Shown: positions 3,653 through 62,892 of the stretch, piece after piece
How the letters are laid out: each line of letters starts with the position of its first letter
Position numbering within the stretch: position 1 is the first letter of the stretch
Sequence record: NC_070936.1
Reading direction: 5' to 3' (one strand)
Length of the DNA stretch: 64,000 nucleotides
Program-made: the position numbers and the translations under genes
Notes under the pieces: model-generated
Told to the model about the DNA's origin: nothing
Seen by the model: only the letters and a program-made list of their open reading frames with translations
The model's database searches: none

Positions 3653-5752
3653 TTAAAAGATATCACTCAGAGAATAATTCTTGAATGAGACATGATGATC
3701 AAAGTGTTCAGAATCTAAGTTATAACCTTCCATCCCGACCATATTCATCAAGTTCATTTTACCAGCAACAGCTTTGGTGTTAGCTCCACCCGCCATCGTT
3801 AGCTTACCACCACCAAGGAGAATTTCAACTTGTTCCTTAGACCATTCCATAATGTCAATAGAACGAGAGGTGATGTTTTCTTCAGATCCAGTATCAAGAT
3901 CAATAAGGTAAACGAAACATTCGGCATCCTGACCTTTACGATAAATACGAGCAATGGTCTGTTTCAACTCATAAGAGCGGAATGGGGAGTTCATCAGAAT
4001 CAACTGGTTACACATCAATAAAGGGTAACCTTCACGGAGTGTGTTGAAAGTAGTAATTAGCGGGTTGACATTTGGATCATTCTCAACCTGTTTAATTACC
4101 TTCTCAATATCACCAGAGTTCTCGCCATGTACAGAAATGGAATCGATACCTTCAGATTCGAAGTAAGTCTCAAGTTCTTTGATAACTTCTATATAGGAAG
4201 TATAAATCGCAGTTTTCTTTTGAACAGACTGAATCATCTCTGGAAGTTTGGCATGTCGTATAATGTCCCTGACAGCCTCCATACGGGCTCTTGATAAAAC
4301 ACGCCCTAATGCCTCACCACGAATCTTAAGTCCCACATACTTGACTGCAGACTTAATATGACGGAAGTATTTGAGGTCATCTCCCTTGAGTTCTTTTTCG
4401 ATATCCTTTTCAACTGAATGAGCAAATTTAGATTTGTCAGAATCAGTAAAGTTGTTGTACCCATGTTTCTGGAAGTAGTTCACAATCTCAATGTACTTAT
4501 CAAGACGGGCTTCTTCTTTAGCATCACCTTCTATCCAAGTGCGATACTGTTCAACAAACTTTTCCCAGTCGGAAATATATCGAGGCATGTGTTCATTATA
4601 GAACATAACACGATCTTCGATAAAGTCCATCATCACTGCTCTGATATTATTCAGAGTGTATTTCTCAGCTCCTGGGAATTTAACAGGTACAACTTCAGGT
4701 TCAGGTGGTTCGTCCATCCCCTCGACTTTAGTAATCGTAAATTTAATTCTACCCAAACGGTGAGCCAGCATCTGACTCAAGAATTCATTATCACGACCAT
4801 ACATCTTCAAGAAGTCAGTCTGAACATCCTTATCAAAGAACTTATCGATAACAGTGAAGAGAGCAAAGGTTTCACGGCCTTGAGCTTTGATAGGTGTACC
4901 TGACATGAACAATACGTCTGAAACAAACTTATTAGAGCAGAGATCAATTAACCCCTGAGTTTGTTGTGACTTATATTCATTATAGTTGTGTGATTCGTCG
5001 ACGATGACTTTGATGGGCTCTTTACCTTGCTTAGAGATAACGGAGATTAAACCATCGAATTCTCTACTACGGAGATTTTCTTTATAGATAATAAAGTAAT
5101 CGGCGTCTGCATGGTTAAGCGGATCGGTCCCATCTAAAGAAGTCCAGATCTTTGGAGTTTCTTTAAAATACTTAGTTGTCATCTCATTAACCCAAGGGGT
5201 CTGAACTAAGTGTTTTGGAACTACAATAATAGTTTTATAGGGAGAGATCATCTTGGACCAAACTAGGCTAGTGTATGTTTTACCACTACCTGGTTCAGCA
5301 TCAAGTAAACAACCCCGTAACTGATACCCATATTTTATACGAGAGTATCCTTCGAGAAACTCTTGTTGATCTGGGAAAGGTTTGAGTTTAAAACTTTTGA
5401 GTGCTTTATTAACATCGTAAGGCGGATAATCCTGGAATGTAGTTTCAATCCAGGTCTTGGCTTTGATCTCGTTATAGAGTTGATTGTATTTAAACATCCC
5501 AACCCGATAACGGTCTACCTGACGCTTGTTACGATTAGTTGTAAAGTGGTCAAGAATCCATGCCAACTCCACCATAAAGAACTGGTGTATTTTGAAACGT
5601 CGGTTATTCAGTTTAGTGATCATTCGGCTAGCAATTACAGATGTACCGAAGTTAGACTTAAGGTCCAACTCAAATGCATTTATATTAATACCGTTGATAA
5701 CATAGTAGGAACCGACCTTTTCCACAGATGGCGAAAAGTTAAAGAATTCCAT
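3653..5752 (-). CDS. SNF2-like superfamily 2 helicase/ATPase
   Basis: Motif I LLDAEPGSGKT, motif II IVDESH, motif III SGTP, motif VI QTIARIYRKGQ. Confidence 0.92.
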   Translation of the reverse strand: MEFFNFSPSVEKVGSYYVINGININAFELDLKSNFGTSVIASRMITKLNNRRFKIHQFFMVELAWILDHFTTNRNKRQVDRYRVGMFKYNQLYNEIKAKTWIETTFQDYPPYDVNKALKSFKLKPFPDQQEFLEGYSRIKYGYQLRGCLLDAEPGSGKTYTSLVWSKMISPYKTIIVVPKHLVQTPWVNEMTTKYFKETPKIWTSLDGTDPLNHADADYFIIYKENLRSREFDGLISVISKQGKEPIKVIVDESHNYNEYKSQQTQGLIDLCSNKFVSDVLFMSGTPIKAQGRETFALFTVIDKFFDKDVQTDFLKMYGRDNEFLSQMLAHRLGRIKFTITKVEGMDEPPEPEVVPVKFPGAEKYTLNNIRAVMMDFIEDRVMFYNEHMPRYISDWEKFVEQYRTWIEGDAKEEARLDKYIEIVNYFQKHGYNNFTDSDKSKFAHSVEKDIEKELKGDDLKYFRHIKSAVKYVGLKIRGEALGRVLSRARMEAVRDIIRHAKLPEMIQSVQKKTAIYTSYIEVIKELETYFESEGIDSISVHGENSGDIEKVIKQVENDPNVNPLITTFNTLREGYPLLMCNQLILMNSPFRSYELKQTIARIYRKGQDAECFVYLIDLDTGSEENITSRSIDIMEWSKEQVEILLGGGKLTMAGGANTKAVAGKMNLMNMVGMEGYNLDSEHFDHHVSFKNYSLSDIF

Positions 5753-5769: not shown

Positions 5770-6873
5770 ATGAACGAAAAAGAATTTGAATTCGAAAGTG
5801 ATAACCACTATAACCTGTATGCTTTTGCGGAGCTGACTCAAAAGAAAGTATTTGAGGATTCAGCTTTTAAAGTTGAAAACCAGGATTACCACGATCGTTA
5901 CAAAGTATCCTTGGGTGGGTACATTTGGTATGTCGCTGCTAAGTTCATTGGTAAATTCTGGCTGATGCTGGAACAATGTGAATACCAACAACTTGAAGCA
6001 ATTATTGCTGAAGAAAAAGATGTTAAGGAAGGTCCATACATCCCTTATGAGAAGATCACTGGTGATGTTGATATGTCGGGTCCTTTCTATGAACTCGTTG
6101 GTGAGGATTTCATCAGCGTTGAAAATCGCATGAGCGGTTTGGTTAAAGCAGTAGCACAGAACATTCGTGAAACTGCAACAATCATCAATGAAGAAATGGA
6201 ACTGGTCGCTAAAGACGGTGATATCGTTAAGGACTTTGATGGTTATGTTACTTTTGACACCAAGCTGGGCCTCGACTTTAATGTAGGTCTGTGCTTTGAC
6301 AAGATCAAACCAATTGCTGAAGATAATGCATCGGCTTGGATTGAACGCACTCCTATCACTCAAGAATATCTGGATACTTATTTCCCTAATGCGGGTAAAC
6401 GTATTCTGGGTAAACTTGATCAAGTCAACTCTCTGGTTAAAGCACTGTTTGAATCTAAGACAGTTACTCGTAACCCTGAACTTGTTGAATATGCGGGCTG
6501 GTTGGTCACGGGTACGCTTGTGAACGCCTATCTTAATCAGAACGTAACTTACATCAGTTTCGGCGGTAAGGACAACTGGAGTGTTCTGGGTAAGGAAACT
6601 AAGAACAACCTGGCTTGCTTTAAATACCTGGATCAGGAAGTCGAATACATTATCAAAATGTTGGATGGTATTGAGAAGACCGATGGTGTTGATATTTACT
6701 CTATGGATATTGATACCTTTGCTGTCTTCGGTCGTAACTTCGATAATAAAGTCGTTACGGAAGCATTGCAAGGTTATGTTCAGCCTCTGTTGGATAAATA
6801 CTCCAAAGGTTTCGAGCAATGTTTAGCTACCCGTATGGCAATGATCGATAACCAACACTTCTTTAAAGCATAA
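5770..6873 (+). CDS. Hypothetical protein (367 aa)
   Basis: Long ORF with RBS (AAGGA) and high-expression-type codons (CTG, GGT, AAC); no motif recognised. Confidence 0.85.
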   Translation: MNEKEFEFESDNHYNLYAFAELTQKKVFEDSAFKVENQDYHDRYKVSLGGYIWYVAAKFIGKFWLMLEQCEYQQLEAIIAEEKDVKEGPYIPYEKITGDVDMSGPFYELVGEDFISVENRMSGLVKAVAQNIRETATIINEEMELVAKDGDIVKDFDGYVTFDTKLGLDFNVGLCFDKIKPIAEDNASAWIERTPITQEYLDTYFPNAGKRILGKLDQVNSLVKALFESKTVTRNPELVEYAGWLVTGTLVNAYLNQNVTYISFGGKDNWSVLGKETKNNLACFKYLDQEVEYIIKMLDGIEKTDGVDIYSMDIDTFAVFGRNFDNKVVTEALQGYVQPLLDKYSKGFEQCLATRMAMIDNQHFFKA

Positions 6874-58395: not shown

Positions 58396-58515
58396 GTTTG
58401 AACCCTCCTAATCACTATTTCGAAATAGACCTTTATAAAAGGCATTGATCTCACTATTCAACCATCCTAGGTTCATAATAGAGAGAAGACGTCATATGAT
58501 TTAAAACTAAACAAA

Positions 58516-58560
58516 CATAAACCCCTACCCCTTCCTTTCGGAGGGAGTAGGGATTAAATG
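58516..58560 (-). terminator. Hairpin terminator family copy 5, closing the minus-strand RNA locus
   Basis: CCCTACCCCTTCC-TTTC-GGAGGGAGTAGGG. Confidence 0.75.
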
Positions 58561-59500
58561 CTTGGCTACATGGACACTCGAAAGGATAATCAATAATGTC
58601 AGGGTTGCAAATCCCGTCTCATTACAATTACCCAGACGGCTGTCTACGGTTGATGTCAACAACTTCCCCTTGGCATAGGGGCGGACCGTTTGCACTTGGC
58701 TTGGTACGCTATAATGCCATATAGTTACCTTCCAATTTCAGCGCTGTTGTCTCACCCTTGAACATCGGGTGGTCGCTCACGGTTAGGGCACGACTGTTCT
58801 ATGACGGTTCCACCAGTGCTGGAGACACTTAAATGGATACCCGTTTCGTCTAATTATTTATTGTCGCCAGACTCGTCAGATAGTACGACATACCCTCACC
58901 AAAGGGATTAGGTTGGTCCTCTGATATCGCATGAGTAACTATGTTACTCTCATAGGCTCTTTGAACATCAATGTTCAACCTTAAGTTATGCTTTCGTTCA
59001 GAAGGACCGATGGGATGTGTTCCCGCATCATCAACTCTCAAGCTCATCACAGTTTCTGCATATATAGCTAGGGTTTGTTCGACGCCAGAACACAAAGGGG
59101 TACAGCGTTCCCAACTTTTGATAGATATTGTTTTTTATGACCGCCCAGGATGGAGTTCGGGTTCTACCATCATCGATAACCCAATAGTCACGTATCGGGA
59201 GTGCATTCAGCTTATGCTACTGGACATTCTATCAAACGCGCTGCTATGTCGCCGAGGTTTACCAGGGCAACACCCACCAGAGGCTACTTACTATAGCGGA
59301 CTACCGCCGCCGTTCACACTCTGGGTTTTTAACTCGGCCTACATTGCCGAGTACTGCCTCCGTAATTTGTCTGCCCAGTGGGGCCGAACTCTACGGAGGT
59401 CTTACATCCCAATACCGTTGACTGGCAAACCCCTTCCAACCCCGGATCAACCGGCTCATTGGACCAGACTTACACTTCCCAACTTAACTGGGTTACTACA
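58561..59500 (-). ncRNA. Large structured ncRNA block 1 (~940 nt), class unassigned
   Basis: No credible ORF. Nested helices such as 58915-24/58998-59008, 59277-82/59319-24 and 59357-64/59392-99. Bounded by a tRNA CCA and a terminator; contains a hammerhead. Confidence 0.75.
58796..58890 (-). ncRNA. Type I hammerhead ribozyme, predicted GUC cleavage between 58803 and 58802
   Basis: CTAT-CTGACGA-GTCT[17 nt]AGAC-GAA-ACGG[33 nt]CCGT-C-ATAG: full catalytic core plus stems I, II and III; loop-II GCGACA is complementary to the 5' flank TGTCGT. Confidence 0.88.
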
Positions 59501-59577
59501 TGGTGGCCCTGACAGGACTTGAACCTGTGACCAGGCGATTATGAGTCACTTGCTCTAACCAGCTGAGCTACAGGACC
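59501..59577 (-). tRNA. tRNA with CAU anticodon (Ile2-like, or elongator Met)
   Basis: GGTCCTGTAGCTCAGCTGGTTAGAGCAAGTGACTCATAATCGCCTGGTCACAGGTTCAAGTCCTGTCAGGGCCACCA; encoded CCA. Confidence 0.95.
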
Positions 59578-59585
59578 ATTGCTTG

Positions 59586-59825
59586 TTATGCTTCTACTGC
59601 TTTCAGATGACGGTCAAGATCTTCGTAACCACCAACATACTGATCGTCAACTACGATCTGCGGAACAGTACGAACTGGACGACCGACGATTTCACCCAAT
59701 TTGGCGCCATCAATACCAGCTTCTACGATATTGATATATTCAACTTCAGCACCTTTGGAATCAGCCAGTGCTTTGGCGCGATCACACCAAGGGCAATTCG
59801 GTTTGCCGTAGATTACAACTTTCAT
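59586..59825 (-). CDS. grx: Glutaredoxin
   Basis: CPWC active site, RTVPQI, VGGYEDL. Confidence 0.95.
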   Translation of the reverse strand: MKVVIYGKPNCPWCDRAKALADSKGAEVEYINIVEAGIDGAKLGEIVGRPVRTVPQIVVDDQYVGGYEDLDRHLKAVEA

Positions 59826-59977
59826 TTATTTTCCTAACTGATTGTAATATGAATAAAACTGAATATCCAAATGAGGAATTCAATAACTCCCCATCCGATA
59901 ACCCCACAGATGAGACCAGCTACTATCAAGGCCCCTGTCCAGGGCCCACTAGAATAAAACATGTGTATCCCTTAAAG

Positions 59978-60054
59978 TGGTCCGCTCTGCTGGGCTCGAA
60001 CCAGCGACCGATTGCTTAGAAGGCAATTGCTCTATCCTACTGAGCTAAGAGCGG
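59978..60054 (-). tRNA. tRNA-Arg(UCU)
   Basis: Canonical cloverleaf, anticodon loop CT-TCT-AA, encoded CCA. Confidence 0.96.
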
Positions 60055-60060
60055 TGAATA

Positions 60061-60148
60061 GCTATCGGGAGTAAGATTCGAACCTACATAGTCTTACGGA
60101 CGTATCCGCCTTCGAATTCCCTCACTAAGTTTAAATAGACTATCCCGA
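60061..60148 (-). ncRNA. tRNA-like RNA A (acceptor and T-arm, no proper anticodon arm)
   Basis: TCGGGA/TCCCGA stem, GTAGG-TTCGAAT-CTTAC T-arm, TAGTCT/AGACTA helix, CGGA-TACG-TCCG hairpin; no CCA. Confidence 0.6.
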
Positions 60149-60166
60149 AAAGTGGCACTTATGATA

Positions 60167-60271
60167 GGTCTCGAGGTCAGGACTCTAACCTGACTACTGC
60201 GATGATGTCCAGTGGTAGAAACTAATCATCCACCATCACATCACTGCGATGTCTTCAACGACATCCTCGAA
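60167..60271 (-). ncRNA. tRNA-like RNA B with elongated central arm
   Basis: TTCGAGG/CCTCGAG acceptor then ACC; TGTC-GTTGAA-GACA D-like arm; ~50-nt central arm; TCAGG-TTAGAGT-CCTGA T-arm. Confidence 0.6.
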
Positions 60272-60374
60272 GTTGGAATTACACACCGAGTAACCGATAG
60301 GTGGGAAGTGGATCCCAGGTATGCGTTTTAGGCCCTGGCCTGTTGTACCCCGGTTGCACTCAGCATGTAATAGT

Positions 60375-60448
60375 TGGCTGGGGTAGTTGGGATTGAACCA
60401 ACGTCCAGGGATTAACAGTCCCCCGCTAAACCACTCAGCTATACCCCA
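60375..60448 (-). tRNA. tRNA-Asn(GUU)
   Basis: TGGGGTATAGCTGAGTGGTTTAGCGGGGGACTGTTAATCCCTGGACGTTGGTTCAATCCCAACTACCCCAGCCA; starts at the base after the HNH stop codon. Confidence 0.93.
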
Positions 60449-60916
60449 TTAAACTTTTGGCTCTATTCCTTGTTTAATACAGTTGTTGCGATATCCATCC
60501 AAATCGAATATCCCATCAACCATATTCTTCATTAGGGTTTTCATCCCCAATCCAGTTCCCTTTGCTGCCTTTCTTGCAGAAGAATAAACTACATTACCCA
60601 CGGTCCAACCATTTGGTCTAGACATCTTAACATGATTGCTCCTATGAACCTTTTCGGAATCTTTCCAATTATCCTTATGGGTTCCTATGGCAATATGTAA
60701 AGGAGAACAACATAATCTATTCCCGCACAAGTGCCTGACAACTGTATTTGGTTTTAGAGTTCCATAAATGTGGGTTGCTACTAATCGATGTGTCGTCCAG
60801 TGTTCACCATCAATAGTTATTTGACCATAACCTTCCCTAGTGCTTTTGGTCCAATTCCAGCAGCCGGTATCGGAATCAAATTTTACATTAGTAAAAACCA
60901 ATTTAACTTTTGACAT
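60449..60916 (-). CDS. Free-standing HNH homing endonuclease (155 aa; start reassigned from 61054)
   Basis: GCWNWT..GYGQI..HRLV...VRHLCGNRLCCSPLHI..GTHKDN (HNH_3 pattern); C-terminal YSSARKAAK helix-turn-helix-like DNA-binding segment. Confidence 0.9.
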   Translation of the reverse strand: MSKVKLVFTNVKFDSDTGCWNWTKSTREGYGQITIDGEHWTTHRLVATHIYGTLKPNTVVRHLCGNRLCCSPLHIAIGTHKDNWKDSEKVHRSNHVKMSRPNGWTVGNVVYSSARKAAKGTGLGMKTLMKNMVDGIFDLDGYRNNCIKQGIEPKV

Positions 60917-60951
60917 ATTAATTCCCGTTCTACCGACTGAACTACATGAGC
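60911..60951 (-). pseudogene. 5' remnant of an enterobacterial-type tRNA-Asn
   Basis: GCTCATGTAGTTCAGTCGGTAGAACGGGAATTAATATGTCA: intact D-arm GTTC-AGTCGGTA-GAAC; collapsed anticodon arm; the ATGTCA variable-loop sequence supplies the HNH start codon. Confidence 0.75.
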
Positions 60952-61615
60952 TTGGGCGGGAGTCACTAGCTCCCAGGTCAGACAATGTCCAACTGTAACT
61001 CGGTTTGATTACCTCACGGCAACCCTGCTCTGGCATCACATGGGTCTCACCCATTATCCCCCAGACTTGGCCTACGATGGCTCCTTTGGCGCACCCAACC
61101 CGAAACGCTCGCTCAAAGACTTATCGTAATAAAGCTTTAAGCAAGAGTTTAACCCACTTGACATCTAAGTCAGCACTGATTCTTACTTGCAATTCAACAA
61201 TCAGTTTCGGTTTACCTGACACCTTGGTCAATGTATCACCCGGTTTGTATCTATCACTTTTGGAAGGGCAGTGGGTTATTTGGTTTTGTCTGCGATAGCT
61301 TGGACCCTGCTCATCTGGATCTCTTCTCCGTGAGGACTGAAAGCACTATTCAAGACTAACGCTTAGTATAACGAAGTATATCTAAGATTCCGAACTTAAT
61401 CGGTAGTTGTTGAGTATCGTAGAGGGACTCGTTTCCAAATTGTGGTCCTACCATTATACAACACTAGTTAGGCTGGAACATGTAATCGCTAGTGAAGTTC
61501 CTATTCGCTGCAACGCGGGCCTAGGAAGGGAATTGGCGAACCGGCTGATCGAGGCGAATGACCATGGCTTAATCATTTCTTTTAGTGTCAACCAGTTCTT
61601 GTTCTTAACAGAGTA
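60952..61615 (-). ncRNA. Large structured ncRNA block 2 (~660 nt), class unassigned
   Basis: No credible ORF. Helices 61151-58/61270-77, 61176-81/61199-204, 61362-61386, 61462-67/61489-94; GNRA-capped hairpin 61008-61023 on the minus strand. Confidence 0.65.
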
Positions 61616-61627
61616 TAGTAAGTTCTG

Positions 61628-61849
61628 TTAATTAAATAATTTTGGTGGTGATATGATATTGGGGCGAGGTCTATAAGTCATCATGCACTTATCTATTCCT
61701 TCCTCTCCCTTTTCATTCCATATCTTAATGATTTCCTTTTCATCCAAGTACTTGCTTAAGAACTTGATCTTCCTTAGAACCCTGTCTGTCCATAGATTGG
61801 ATTTGTTCTTAGCACCCCACCACGATCTGAAGCTAATCTTCACACTCAT
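61628..61849 (-). CDS. Small basic hypothetical protein (73 aa)
   Basis: Start overlaps the end of the Tad2-like gene; phage-like composition. Confidence 0.55.
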   Translation of the reverse strand: MSVKISFRSWWGAKNKSNLWTDRVLRKIKFLSKYLDEKEIIKIWNEKGEEGIDKCMMTYRPRPNIISPPKLFN

Positions 61850-62072
61850 CCCACAGCTTCCAGTCTTCTGCTAAGAGATCAGATACTGAAGGAACCCAGG
61901 TATTGGTGATGAGTCTAACACTATCAACAATAATGAAGAAAGGTTTGATCCCAGGCACATTGTGAATACTCACGTAAAGACCTTTACCGTTCCAACCATT
62001 ACGTTGGTATTTCTTCCCTTCCTTTAGTCCTTCCAGAACTTCTGAGAAAGTAAGTAATTTAACTTTAGTCAT
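61833..62072 (-). CDS. tad2: Tad2/DUF2829-like anti-defence (signal sponge) protein, 79 aa; start reassigned from 62183
   Basis: TFSEVLEGLKEGKKYQRNGWNGKG and WVPSVSDLLAEDW are the DUF2829 signature motifs; RBS AAAGGA 6 nt upstream. Confidence 0.8.
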   Translation of the reverse strand: MTKVKLLTFSEVLEGLKEGKKYQRNGWNGKGLYVSIHNVPGIKPFFIIVDSVRLITNTWVPSVSDLLAEDWKLWDECED

Positions 62073-62085
62073 ATTCATTCCTTTA

Positions 62086-62797
62086 GGAAAAAGGCCCCAC
62101 ACCAAATACAAGGGCATGGGGCAAAGGGAAGTCCAATGGAACACATTAACCATTGGACCAAGCAGTAACCAGCTGGCGGTCACGCTTTTAATGTGGACTT
62201 GTTAGATCACATTAAAAGTGCCAGAGATTCATTTCTCTGGCTGCTCAAAATAAGCTTAAAGCGTTTGATTTTGGAGAAGTTGAGGCGTCAACTTCCATAT
62301 GTGTATTTCAGAAAACAAACATATGGAAGTAGGGTCTTTCGACCCTTCCAACCTCACTGAAGACTTCCTTGCCTTCCCTAGGAATACTATTTCTAATACT
62401 CTTAGGGAAAGCAAATGCATACCAGGAAAAGTAGTATGCACTCACCTTCTTACCTATTGTGAAGATATCAAAGCCGCGGAGCACGATCCCTTCTTTATAT
62501 TCACTCTTTCTAATTGAATGAATTATAAAGAAAGGGGGAAGGGCAGACTTCCCACCTTTGGTACAGGAGTGATGAACAATGGCCACAAAAACCCGGCAAT
62601 GAGCATTAGTGGTAGAAGCACGATGGCAGTTCGTGATTCTTTAAATGGACTTATTCTAATTAAGATCACTTAAAGAATCAGAGATATTAATCGTGACATA
62701 ATATCTCTGGCCTGTGTATTTAATCACAGCAAACGTGTTATGAGCAATGCAACTTGAACAACAAAAAGAGAAGTGGAAGAAGTTCACTTTTTGTTAC
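62086..62797 (-). ncRNA. Large structured ncRNA or leader, block 3 (~710 nt), class unassigned
   Basis: Almost continuous long helices (62131-39/62150-58, 62185-95/62208-18, 62291-302/62319-30, 62635-44/62670-79, 62679-88/62700-09); GAAA tetraloop on the minus strand (62331-46); ends in GCCCCA/TGGGGC-CTTTTT. Confidence 0.7.
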
Positions 62798-62822
62798 ATA
62801 ATATAAATAAGTTCCATTATTA

Positions 62823-62845
62823 AATAAATAGATATTATTAGATTG
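62823..62845 (+). promoter_or_regulatory. Early-type phage promoter motif (partial)
   Basis: AATA-AATAG-ATATTATT-AGAT-TG. Confidence 0.5.
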
Positions 62846-62892
62846 AATATACGTTGATATTAATTCTAACTTTAAGTATAGAGGAACTTATT

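Follow-up and report, generated by a model that had tools for sequence, protein, structure and literature searches.

The last 64 kb of the genome of Klebsiella phage N1M2 (NC_070936, 253,367 bp, genus Nimduovirus), hereafter referred to as the window (record coordinate = window coordinate + 189367), contain a 4.3-kb locus on the minus strand that, with high confidence, encodes real structured RNA genes. These comprise a ~0.7-kb array of hairpins (block 3), a ~1-kb RNA with a built-in hammerhead ribozyme (block 1), and three small RNAs, two of which resemble tRNAs. We are moderately confident that the locus as a whole represents a conserved island of RNA genes and a few small accessory protein genes, which is characteristic of OBP-like jumbo phages and organized in several units. 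At the level of sequence comparison, the RNAs, their strand, and their folds are demonstrated by conservation and strand-specific covariation. Research on phiKZ-related jumbo phages has centered almost wholly on their proteins, such as those of the nucleus shell and their own RNA polymerases. About 2.8 kb of this one locus consist of conserved, covarying RNA that is annotated in no genome record, and some records even overlay it with spurious open reading frames (ORFs).

The locus was initially highlighted in a preliminary description made from the sequence alone, which proposed an RNA-dominated operon in a phiKZ-like jumbo phage with all functional parts on the minus strand, more than half of it non-coding yet densely base-paired. 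A 4.5-kb segment containing the locus matches the N1M2 record with 100 % identity. The label phiKZ-like is fair, given that the N1M2 paper grouped the phage beside Pseudomonas phage OBP, a phiKZ-related jumbo phage, and reported genes for both virion and non-virion RNA polymerase subunits. All functional features indeed lie on the minus strand, and ORFs (~1.28 kb) and tRNAs (0.23 kb) account for so little of the 4.29 kb that ~65 % belongs to neither. The claim of dense base pairing held for block 3 and moderately for block 1, but failed for the third non-coding segment, block 2, in single-sequence folding. The island shares its strand with the virion structural genes and a thymidylate kinase gene. 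The N1M2 paper annotates this locus with no more than three tRNAs, one promoter, and two terminator hairpins, and our literature searches found no description of the RNAs reported here.

BLAST searches located the non-coding blocks in seven further phages, in none of which they carry any annotation. These are the Serratia phages Yubaba and Sureiya, with ~87–90 % identity to N1M2 in the blocks, as well as Shewanella phage SXP01, Pantoea phage Survivor, Edwardsiella phage pEt-SU, Kosakonia phage Kc263, and Pseudomonas phage OBP. Four additional jumbo contigs (L009, L010, L011, and L014) were obtained from IMG/VR with the adjacent virion protein as query. Altogether, at least 12 OBP-like jumbo phages or contigs have conserved the locus in synteny, as the comparison with relatives called for by the preliminary description revealed. 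The order common to all relatives is divergent gene, block 3, Tad2-like gene, block 2, (HNH gene), tRNAs and small RNAs, glutaredoxin gene, (tRNAs), block 1, terminator, and virion genes, with the content of the middle part reordered between phages. The non-coding blocks can be aligned at 60–90 % identity (the MAFFT alignments of the long blocks being imperfect in places), and blocks 1 and 3 persist across phages whose proteins are just 40–75 % identical. The helices of the locus covary in a strand-specific manner, and chance structure is not the explanation. The terminase gene is a close neighbor of the locus in OBP, pEt-SU, and Survivor; in N1M2, the locus lies near the end of the record.

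Within block 1, the hammerhead ribozyme that had been suspected there proved real by both conservation and covariation. It is present as a single copy at the homologous site in 13 of 13 related phages and contigs, with a complete core within positions 58800–58910 and the core pattern occurring once per operon; this stretch could be aligned in all 11 other phages of a coverage profile, a breadth equal to that of the glutaredoxin gene. An alignment of 11 distinct sequences shows no variation at the catalytic positions, in the closing A-U pair of stem III, or in the GUC triplet, and the core that defines the family (positions 3–9 and 12–14, the A-U pair 15.1–16.1, and a base other than G at position 17) is present, the sole variable core position being 7, which is free in the family. 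Of the three stems, only stem I is open, the other two being capped, and the topology is hence that of a type I hammerhead. Stem III forms a conserved hairpin of ~40 nt with an invariant apical loop, and loop II comprises 16–21 nt.

A covariance model built on this structure retrieved one copy per phage with 78–103 bits and gave no other match in the window. In the resulting alignment, 87.6 % of the cells pair, as compared to 28–44 % if the partners are slid by one to three columns, and 19 pairs are changed on both sides versus 4–8 in these slid controls; none of 500 shuffles reached the observed covariation values. The changes on both sides are distributed over stem I (4 of 4 pairs), stem II (1 of 4, with the other three invariant), and stem III (10 of 14). 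Additionally, loop II can form a pseudoknot of 4–7 bp with the 5' flank of stem I in all 12 sequences considered, including an independent metagenome copy, and four of its six pairs are changed on both sides, with one position showing four Watson–Crick pair types. The ribozyme is thus apparent in sequence and fold, from which we infer the cleavage itself, and we regard it as very likely that the motif is cleavage-competent.

Known type I hammerheads (RF00163, clan CL00010), which are common in phages and prophages, share with the N1M2 ribozyme the core, the three helices, the open stem I, and the GUC site; a tertiary contact that involves loop II may be a further common trait. The N1M2 motif differs by its long stem III, the 16–21-nt loop II, and a short stem I combined with the putative flank pseudoknot, and its copy sits in a conserved ~1-kb RNA instead of between protein genes. 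It represents a novel variant within the type I class. Scans of IMG/VR and metagenomes for hammerheads with a long stem III yielded just two more members, one of which probably stems from the same phage as L011, suggesting that this family is rare. The formation of a circular RNA by means of a second ribozyme was considered and rejected, as our covariance model finds one hammerhead per phage and none elsewhere in the window. Separately, short hammerheads of a type I-like form that agree with it in their core letters were encountered in 18 other viral contigs (IMG/VR, among L015–L038), of which L019, L026, and L036 carry two to four close together; in the 13 loci tested, none of these short motifs reached the Rfam gathering score.

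The ribozyme is embedded in a larger conserved structure. The ~600 nt on its 5' side are kept in all phages and constitute the major part of RNA A (Table 1). Block 1 as a single sequence folds moderately better than its shuffled counterparts (z = −3.8), whereas the alignment fold of RNA A from 11 phages reached z = −17 against column shuffles, with 66 covarying pairs; the shuffles averaged 20 and did not exceed 30. The sense strand surpasses the antisense strand in fold energy (−119 vs. −100), in cells with G-U pairs (163 vs. 62), and in the number of covarying pairs. For the 5' 250 nt, RNAalifold predicted 38 pairs, 22 of them with compensatory changes. The G+C content across block 1 amounts to 0.48–0.53, compared to ~0.40 for the genome, and no reading frame is conserved on either strand. 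In N1M2, the presumed head of RNA A directly follows tRNA(CAU) and holds a conserved motif of its own; in L009, L010, L011, and L014, RNA A comes after a protein gene instead of a tRNA and is headed by a different element, the same AT-rich motif of 12–13 nt that is found at the head of block 3 (see below).

On the other side of the predicted cleavage site, RNA B occurs in 8 of 11 phages (z = −10, with a folding energy better in sense than in antisense) and exhibits 24 covarying pairs versus a mean of 11.4; the antisense strand likewise has 24. It is missing in SXP01, pEt-SU, and Survivor, where a terminator directly follows the ribozyme. In N1M2, the region ends with terminator T2, on which our own fold and the supplement of the N1M2 paper agree, in line with the terminator initially placed there. 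Taken together, block 1 is predicted to be a ~1-kb RNA gene (59500–58508) that the ribozyme would split into RNAs of 0.68 kb and 0.29 kb. A large RNA with a built-in ribozyme has predictable ends and should hence be traceable in the transcriptome of any infected culture.

Several further observations concern block 1. A ~150-nt segment of RNA A (59094–59244, minus strand) is its best-conserved part in seven relatives, for example, with 77–85 % identity in Kc263, pEt-SU, and Survivor versus ~62–70 % in the surroundings; OBP, L009, and L010 lack it entirely, which points to an optional inserted domain. Just 5' of the hammerhead, a junction contains a six-base palindrome (58921–58926, minus strand) that is kept in 10 of 11 phages, with OBP being one base off. 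One may speculate that this palindrome, if exposed, could mediate RNA–RNA dimerization. The RefSeq gene gp252 (58971–59522, plus strand) runs antisense to RNA A and is not conserved, being broken into several frames even in Yubaba. The records of Kc263, Moabite, and OBP likewise place small "hypothetical proteins" on top of the ribozyme or the small RNAs or within the block-1 region. A host origin or mimicry of block 1 was rejected, since no match was found in 5,426 complete E. coli genomes. The interval that separates T2 from the virion gene holds a conserved TATG-containing motif within 58440–58500 (minus strand); TATG has been described as the late-promoter signature of phiKZ, which suggests that the late structural operon may start right after the RNA island.

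Block 3 is the most strongly folded part of the locus. As a single sequence, it has a minimum free energy of −216 kcal/mol compared to −138 kcal/mol for shuffles (z = −18.9), and the alignment fold of 10 phages gave z = −25 with 60 covarying pairs versus a column-shuffle mean of 10. Cells with G-U pairs number 174 in sense and 24 in antisense, and the sense strand is also ahead in folding energy and covarying pairs; the G-U excess on the sense strand argues for selection acting on RNA, not on DNA. The RNA is laid out as a chain of about eleven near-perfect hairpins that form five double modules, each consisting of a G+C hairpin and, after 0–2 nt, a longer hairpin, the 5' arm of which is rich in pyrimidines and the 3' arm in purines. 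No conserved ORF is present in block 3. That such hairpins serve as a general intergenic signal was rejected, because within the window they occur in block 3 alone. At the 3' end lies terminator T1, which nine of the 10 aligned phages possess and SXP01 lacks. The AT-rich, promoter-like motif at the 5' edge was found in 10 of 10 phages with block 3, exactly so in eight, and is unique in the window. By contrast, all seven window matches to the published N1M2 early-promoter consensus (6645–62847; 1.2 expected by chance) lie on the plus strand, so that this consensus was rejected as the promoter on the minus strand of the locus. Going by its sequence features, block 3 could exist as an independent RNA of 0.7 kb, serve as an attenuating leader, or combine the two.

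The stretch of 320 nt that separates tRNA-Asn from tRNA-Arg contains three modules that recur in other orders in relatives with up to 93 % identity, bearing out the earlier proposal of three small structured RNAs at this position, two of which turned out to be tRNA-like. The support for sR-a is weak (7 covarying pairs, z = −2.5). For sR-b, compared among six phages, z = −8 was obtained together with 12 covarying pairs versus a mean of 2.2; the apex of its long arm is invariant, and the pEt-SU copy is devoid of this arm. In sR-c, covariation can be recognized by eye in all four helices of the alignment. Both sR-b and sR-c possess an acceptor stem as well as a T arm whose loop resembles a T loop in sequence, and the T arm of sR-c looks canonical; ARAGORN calls neither of them a tRNA, and sR-c scores 20.7 bits with the Rfam tRNA model RF00005, below the threshold of 29, with the L014 copy reaching 31.5 bits. 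Unannotated homologs of the small-RNA region were detected in 48 phage records, including Moabite-like jumbo phages, in which sR-c adjoins tRNA-Tyr. In the T4-like Klebsiella phages Potts1 and VAC36, sR-c fills a tRNA-sized gap between tRNA-Leu and tRNA-Thr.

The sR-c family spans unrelated large phages and touches on the long-standing puzzle of small stable RNAs in phage tRNA clusters. The tRNA cluster of phage T4 encodes two small stable RNAs and the homing endonuclease SegB of the GIY-YIG type. It resembles that of N1M2 in combining a tRNA array with tRNA-sized stable RNAs that have tRNA-like ends and with a homing endonuclease gene, the difference being that the N1M2 endonuclease is of the HNH type. 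The sR-c family and the small stable RNAs of phage tRNA clusters may be kin; among the 48 records with homologs, no match was to an Escherichia phage. Another likeness exists with the Y-RNA-like tRNA mimics of bacteria and phages (YrlA, RF02553), which likewise join a tRNA-like module (acceptor and T arm) to a long helix. The Rfam match to this family is at chance level (18 bits, E = 3.7), and the architectures differ: in YrlA, the RNA ends form a protein-binding stem, whereas in sR-b and sR-c they form the acceptor stem.

For the locus in its entirety, Rfam searches of the window and 24 related or control loci, evaluated at the gathering score and at E ≤ 10, matched tRNAs alone. Of the RNAs that had been proposed for such a search, the tRNAs were thus recovered, and the hammerhead and the large RNAs matched no model. 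As far as the Rfam models reach, RNase P RNA, tmRNA, group I and II introns, 6S, HEARO, OLE, and drum RNAs are ruled out. The proximity of large structured RNAs to phage tRNAs had evoked GOLLD and ROOL, which, according to a preprint, form RNA-only multimers as observed by cryo-electron microscopy (bioRxiv 10.1101/2024.12.08.627333). The large RNAs of N1M2 are alike in their size class of 0.6–0.7 kb, their many helices, the phage setting, and the adjacency to tRNAs. Nevertheless, kinship had to be dropped: the GOLLD and ROOL models gave no match at any threshold, E ≤ 10 included, in the window and 11 related loci, and an identity of the large RNAs with either family was accordingly rejected, leaving a likeness by context only. 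Moreover, the RNA described here carries a ribozyme and occurs in jumbo phages of Gammaproteobacteria. The large RNAs are without detectable relatives outside OBP-like phages, and they bear on the old question of the purpose of large ornate RNAs beside phage tRNA genes. In this regard, N1M2 and its relatives can be propagated on common laboratory Enterobacteria.

Theta ribozymes, which are similar to that of hepatitis delta virus (HDV-like), adjoin tRNAs in gut phages. In common with the hammerhead of N1M2, they are self-cleaving, occur in the neighborhood of phage tRNAs, and define RNA ends. They belong to a different class, and the N1M2 hammerhead is located ~620 nt from the nearest tRNA and would cut a large non-coding RNA, not a tRNA trailer.

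How the island might work can be outlined as follows. The promoter-like motif would start the 0.7-kb block-3 RNA, which would end at T1 before the Tad2-like gene; upon read-through of T1, block 3 would become the leader of this gene. Host tRNA-processing enzymes would presumably cut the tRNAs and the tRNA-like RNAs from the transcript, as extrapolated from established tRNA biology. The hammerhead would cleave the ~1-kb block-1 RNA in cis after C17 (58803), releasing as 5' product a 0.68-kb structured RNA with a 2',3'-cyclic phosphate end and as 3' product a 0.29-kb structured RNA with a 5'-hydroxyl group, on which the terminator hairpin would be kept. The presence of T1 in 9 of 10 phages and of a promoter-like motif at RNA A in four relatives makes several transcription units at least as likely as one. 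The large RNAs could be stable and trans-acting, for instance, as protein-binding scaffolds or sponges made during infection for host takeover or counter-defense. Their context comprises the gene for a putative Tad2-like sponge, tRNAs, a putative homing endonuclease, and a genome part that varies between relatives, and phages keep accessory takeover and counter-defense genes in variable genome parts. A bolder and rather improbable version of this scheme holds that two undescribed families of large RNA in OBP-like jumbo phages, the self-cutting ~1-kb RNA and the five-module 0.7-kb RNA, are both RNA-only devices, possibly acting as assemblies similar to GOLLD and ROOL or as sponges that titrate a host RNA-binding or defense protein. 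If true, the large RNAs and tRNA-like RNAs together would be the first known RNA-based takeover module in phiKZ-related phages.

A number of points weigh against the reading that we prefer. The ribozyme remained below the gathering score and unreported at E ≤ 10 in the Rfam search of the region with six hammerhead models, and the best result, from a search with 131 nt, was a mis-registered partial match to RF00008 with 14.1 bits versus a threshold of 48.5. We attribute this failure to the long stem III and the loop II insertions, and a shorter viral hammerhead used as control scored 31 bits on RF00163; current hammerhead models hence appear blind to variants with long insertions. Stem I comprises just 3–4 bp, and the pseudoknot is no longer than what shuffled loops often give within single sequences, its support being comparative. 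The motif at the 5' edge of block 3 shares with the published early-promoter consensus the AT-rich core alone and does not match it at up to three mismatches. The comparison encompasses ~13 representatives, several of which are close relatives, and column shuffles keep the composition of the columns but not the phylogeny. Lastly, a role in counter-defense or in the sponging of host factors, as suggested by gene neighborhood, has to be considered doubtful.

Among the alternatives, the one that survives best, even though we deem it rather unlikely, interprets the blocks as cis-acting parts of mRNAs. Block 3 would be an attenuating leader, in which the five modules of G+C hairpin and U-rich tract together with T1 set the transcription that reaches the Tad2-like gene and the tRNAs, and block 1 would be a 3' processing or insulating region, whose ribozyme and terminator end the accessory operon before the late virion genes on the same strand. 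Two of the G+C hairpins of block 3 with their U-rich tracts do score terminator-like in a simple scan, the space from T1 to the start codon of the Tad2-like gene is too short for a promoter, and SXP01 has no terminator between block 3 and the Tad2-like ORF, so that block 3 is a leader there. The purine-rich 3' arms, however, covary with the U-rich arms, which means that the read-through fold is itself under selection. With respect to block 1, the terminator immediately 3' of the ribozyme in SXP01, pEt-SU, and Survivor as well as the late-type TATG-containing motif between T2 and the virion gene fit an insulating role, but a processing or insulating signal requires neither 0.6 kb of covarying RNA 5' of the ribozyme nor a 0.25-kb domain 3' of it. 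In addition, RNA A in four relatives has a promoter-like motif of its own and follows a protein gene, not a tRNA.

The preliminary description itself had favored one 4.3-kb precursor that is cut at the tRNAs and by the ribozyme, with the resulting non-coding RNAs and tRNA mimics possibly forming a counter-defense module together with the Tad2-like sponge. This seems unlikely to us. One strand does carry all parts, bracketed by a single promoter-like motif and a single strong terminator at the end, and the module is conserved as a block; likewise, the Tad2-like protein is a true member of its family, and tRNA-like RNAs are present. Nevertheless, the conserved terminator T1 is internal to the supposed precursor, relatives possess a second promoter-like motif, and the middle content is shuffled between phages, which fits independent modules. 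Counter-defense is suggested by the linkage to the Tad2-like gene and the tRNAs, and L014 has the locus without a Tad2-like gene.

It is very improbable that the blocks act as DNA, be it as replication origin, packaging site, or inverted-repeat recombination hot spots. Block 3 is full of inverted repeats, and the terminase gene is nearby in OBP, pEt-SU, and Survivor, as is the record end in N1M2; yet the G-U pairs so frequent in block 3 and RNA A would be mismatches on the other strand, the ribozyme core, the tRNA-like folds, and the terminators are features of RNA, and the elevated G+C content given above is as expected for structured RNAs. Equally remote is the notion that the blocks are debris of decayed protein genes, dead tRNAs, and scars of endonuclease cassettes, for which a tRNA-Asn remnant and an HNH cassette, a gene slot within block 2 that is empty in N1M2 and Yubaba and filled in seven relatives, and the shuffle-level folding of block 2 could be invoked, but which is already contradicted for blocks 1 and 3 (conserved, covarying, and without ORF remnants) and finds no tblastn trace of the optional gene in N1M2. 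The island of RNA genes in several units therefore remains our preferred reading, and Table 1 summarizes its components.

Table 1. Features of the RNA island and its borders, listed in 5' to 3' direction of the minus strand (window coordinates, except for the last row).
Feature	Position	Strand	Basis or remark
Published early promoter of the divergent operon	62812..62847	plus	N1M2 paper, supplementary table 4; consensus match 62830-62847
Promoter-like AT-rich motif	62794..62806	minus	5' edge of block-3 RNA; putative promoter function
Block-3 RNA, ~0.7-kb hairpin array, non-coding RNA or long leader	62086..62796	minus	Fold energy, covariation
Block-3 double-hairpin module 1	62636..62709	minus	
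Block-3 double-hairpin module 2	62488..62553	minus	
Block-3 double-hairpin module 3	62371..62443	minus	
Block-3 double-hairpin module 4	62291..62345	minus	
Block-3 double-hairpin module 5	62185..62241	minus	Its G+C hairpin is a listed terminator in the N1M2 paper
Terminator T1	62086..62122	minus	Covarying hairpin and U-run, ~13 nt 5' of the Tad2-like start codon
Tad2-like (DUF2829) gene, 79 aa	61833..62072	minus	PF11195, 64 bits (cut-off 25), whole length
73-aa ORF	61628..61849	minus	72 % identical in Yubaba and Sureiya only
Block 2a, conserved non-coding flank	61354..61627	minus	Sequence conservation
Block 2b, conserved non-coding flank with covarying hairpins	61055..61353	minus	Alignment fold
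Remnant of resident tRNA-Asn, one truncation	60925..60951	minus	27 nt, identical to start of Yubaba tRNA-Asn
HNH endonuclease gene, 155 aa	60449..60916	minus	PF13392
tRNA-Asn(GUU), second allele, adjoins HNH gene	60375..60448	minus	ARAGORN and Rfam
Small RNA sR-a	60285..60372	minus	93 % identical in pEt-SU; also in L014, Survivor, L011
Small RNA sR-b	60178..60282	minus	tRNA-like cloverleaf, very long arm in anticodon-arm position
Small RNA sR-c	60063..60149	minus	tRNA-like: acceptor stem, T arm, branched arm
tRNA-Arg(UCU)	59978..60054	minus	ARAGORN and Rfam
42-aa hydrophobic ORF	59834..59962	minus	Conserved in Yubaba, Sureiya, pEt-SU, L010
Glutaredoxin gene, 79 aa	59586..59825	minus	PF00462, 57 bits; CPWC motif in translation
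tRNA-Met(CAU)	59501..59577	minus	ARAGORN and Rfam
RNA A, large conserved structured RNA	58803..59500	minus	3' end is the hammerhead cleavage site; alignment fold, covariation
Type I hammerhead ribozyme	58799..58890	minus	Conserved core, covariation; predicted cut between 58803 (C17) and 58802
RNA B, conserved structured tail	58556..58802	minus	3' of predicted hammerhead cut; alignment fold, covariation
Terminator T2	58508..58555	minus	−30 kcal/mol hairpin and U-run; conserved in relatives; listed in the N1M2 paper
sR-c homologs	L047 2501-2582; L050 401-482; L048 3501-3785; L051 1501-1587		

The three tRNAs (CAU, Arg, and Asn) had been correctly placed on the minus strand, and so had the broken tRNA-Asn next to an HNH gene: the 27-nt remnant sits just 5' of the HNH ORF. 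Of 12 phages, four (N1M2, L010, L011, and L014) possess the HNH gene, which always comes after a tRNA-Asn remnant; downstream of the gene, N1M2 and L010 carry another tRNA-Asn allele, the GUU allele that these two have in common. With its HNH domain, its presence or absence at one and the same site, and the disruption of the target gene, it exhibits the traits of a free-standing HNH homing endonuclease. Together with tRNA-Asn, this resembles a homing cassette equipped with a substitute copy of its target. In RefSeq, the HNH coding sequence (60449–61036, minus strand) is extended in 5' direction across the tRNA remnant.

That the Tad2-like gene truly belongs to its namesake family is confirmed by the Pfam profile and by matches to solved Tad2 chains in the PDB (ModTad2, 9eib, E = 2.4e-12; Tad2, 8v3e, E = 3.3e-12), in addition to SPO1 Gp34.65 (8sme) and the anti-CRISPR protein AcrIIA7. 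It thereby shares profile and structure matches with the Tad2 anti-Thoeris sponges (PF11195; 8v3e, 9eib, 8sme) at the sequence level, and the matched fold also includes an anti-CRISPR, i.e., AcrIIA7. The gene is conserved in all phages but L014, and in RefSeq it is mislabeled as "methionine--tRNA ligase". The adjacent 73-aa ORF, also noticed beforehand, exists and is conserved just in the two closest relatives; it has no match in Pfam or PHROG.

Block 2 had been introduced as one structured unit, of which only the 3' half stood up. A single large RNA was rejected, as the block folds at the level of shuffles in single-sequence analysis (z = −0.6) and consists of the two flanks of an optional gene of 67–74 aa. 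Block 2b, compared among seven sequences, indeed contains covarying hairpins (z = −7.3; 26 covarying pairs versus a mean of 9.7 and a maximum of 17), and its last ~95 nt are 94 % identical in L011. The 5' half, block 2a, has a core (61379–61535) that is 72–83 % identical in SXP01 and OBP, but its structure is unsupported in the four sequences available, with z = −2.3 and no advantage over the antisense strand. The optional gene, which belongs to PHROG 5444, occupies the slot between 61294 and 61435 (minus strand) in seven relatives, for example, at 6243–6467 of the OBP locus (L005) and at 4533–4736 of the Sureiya locus (L003). It is absent in N1M2 and Yubaba, with no trace in N1M2 by tblastn. 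Sureiya and Yubaba are otherwise near-identical and differ by this gene, the Sureiya copy of which is annotated as a helicase-family protein.

Towards block 1, the 42-aa hydrophobic ORF matches no known family in Pfam or PHROG. The neighboring glutaredoxin gene, assigned as such from the outset and verified by its Pfam profile and CxxC motif, is found in 12 of 12 phages.

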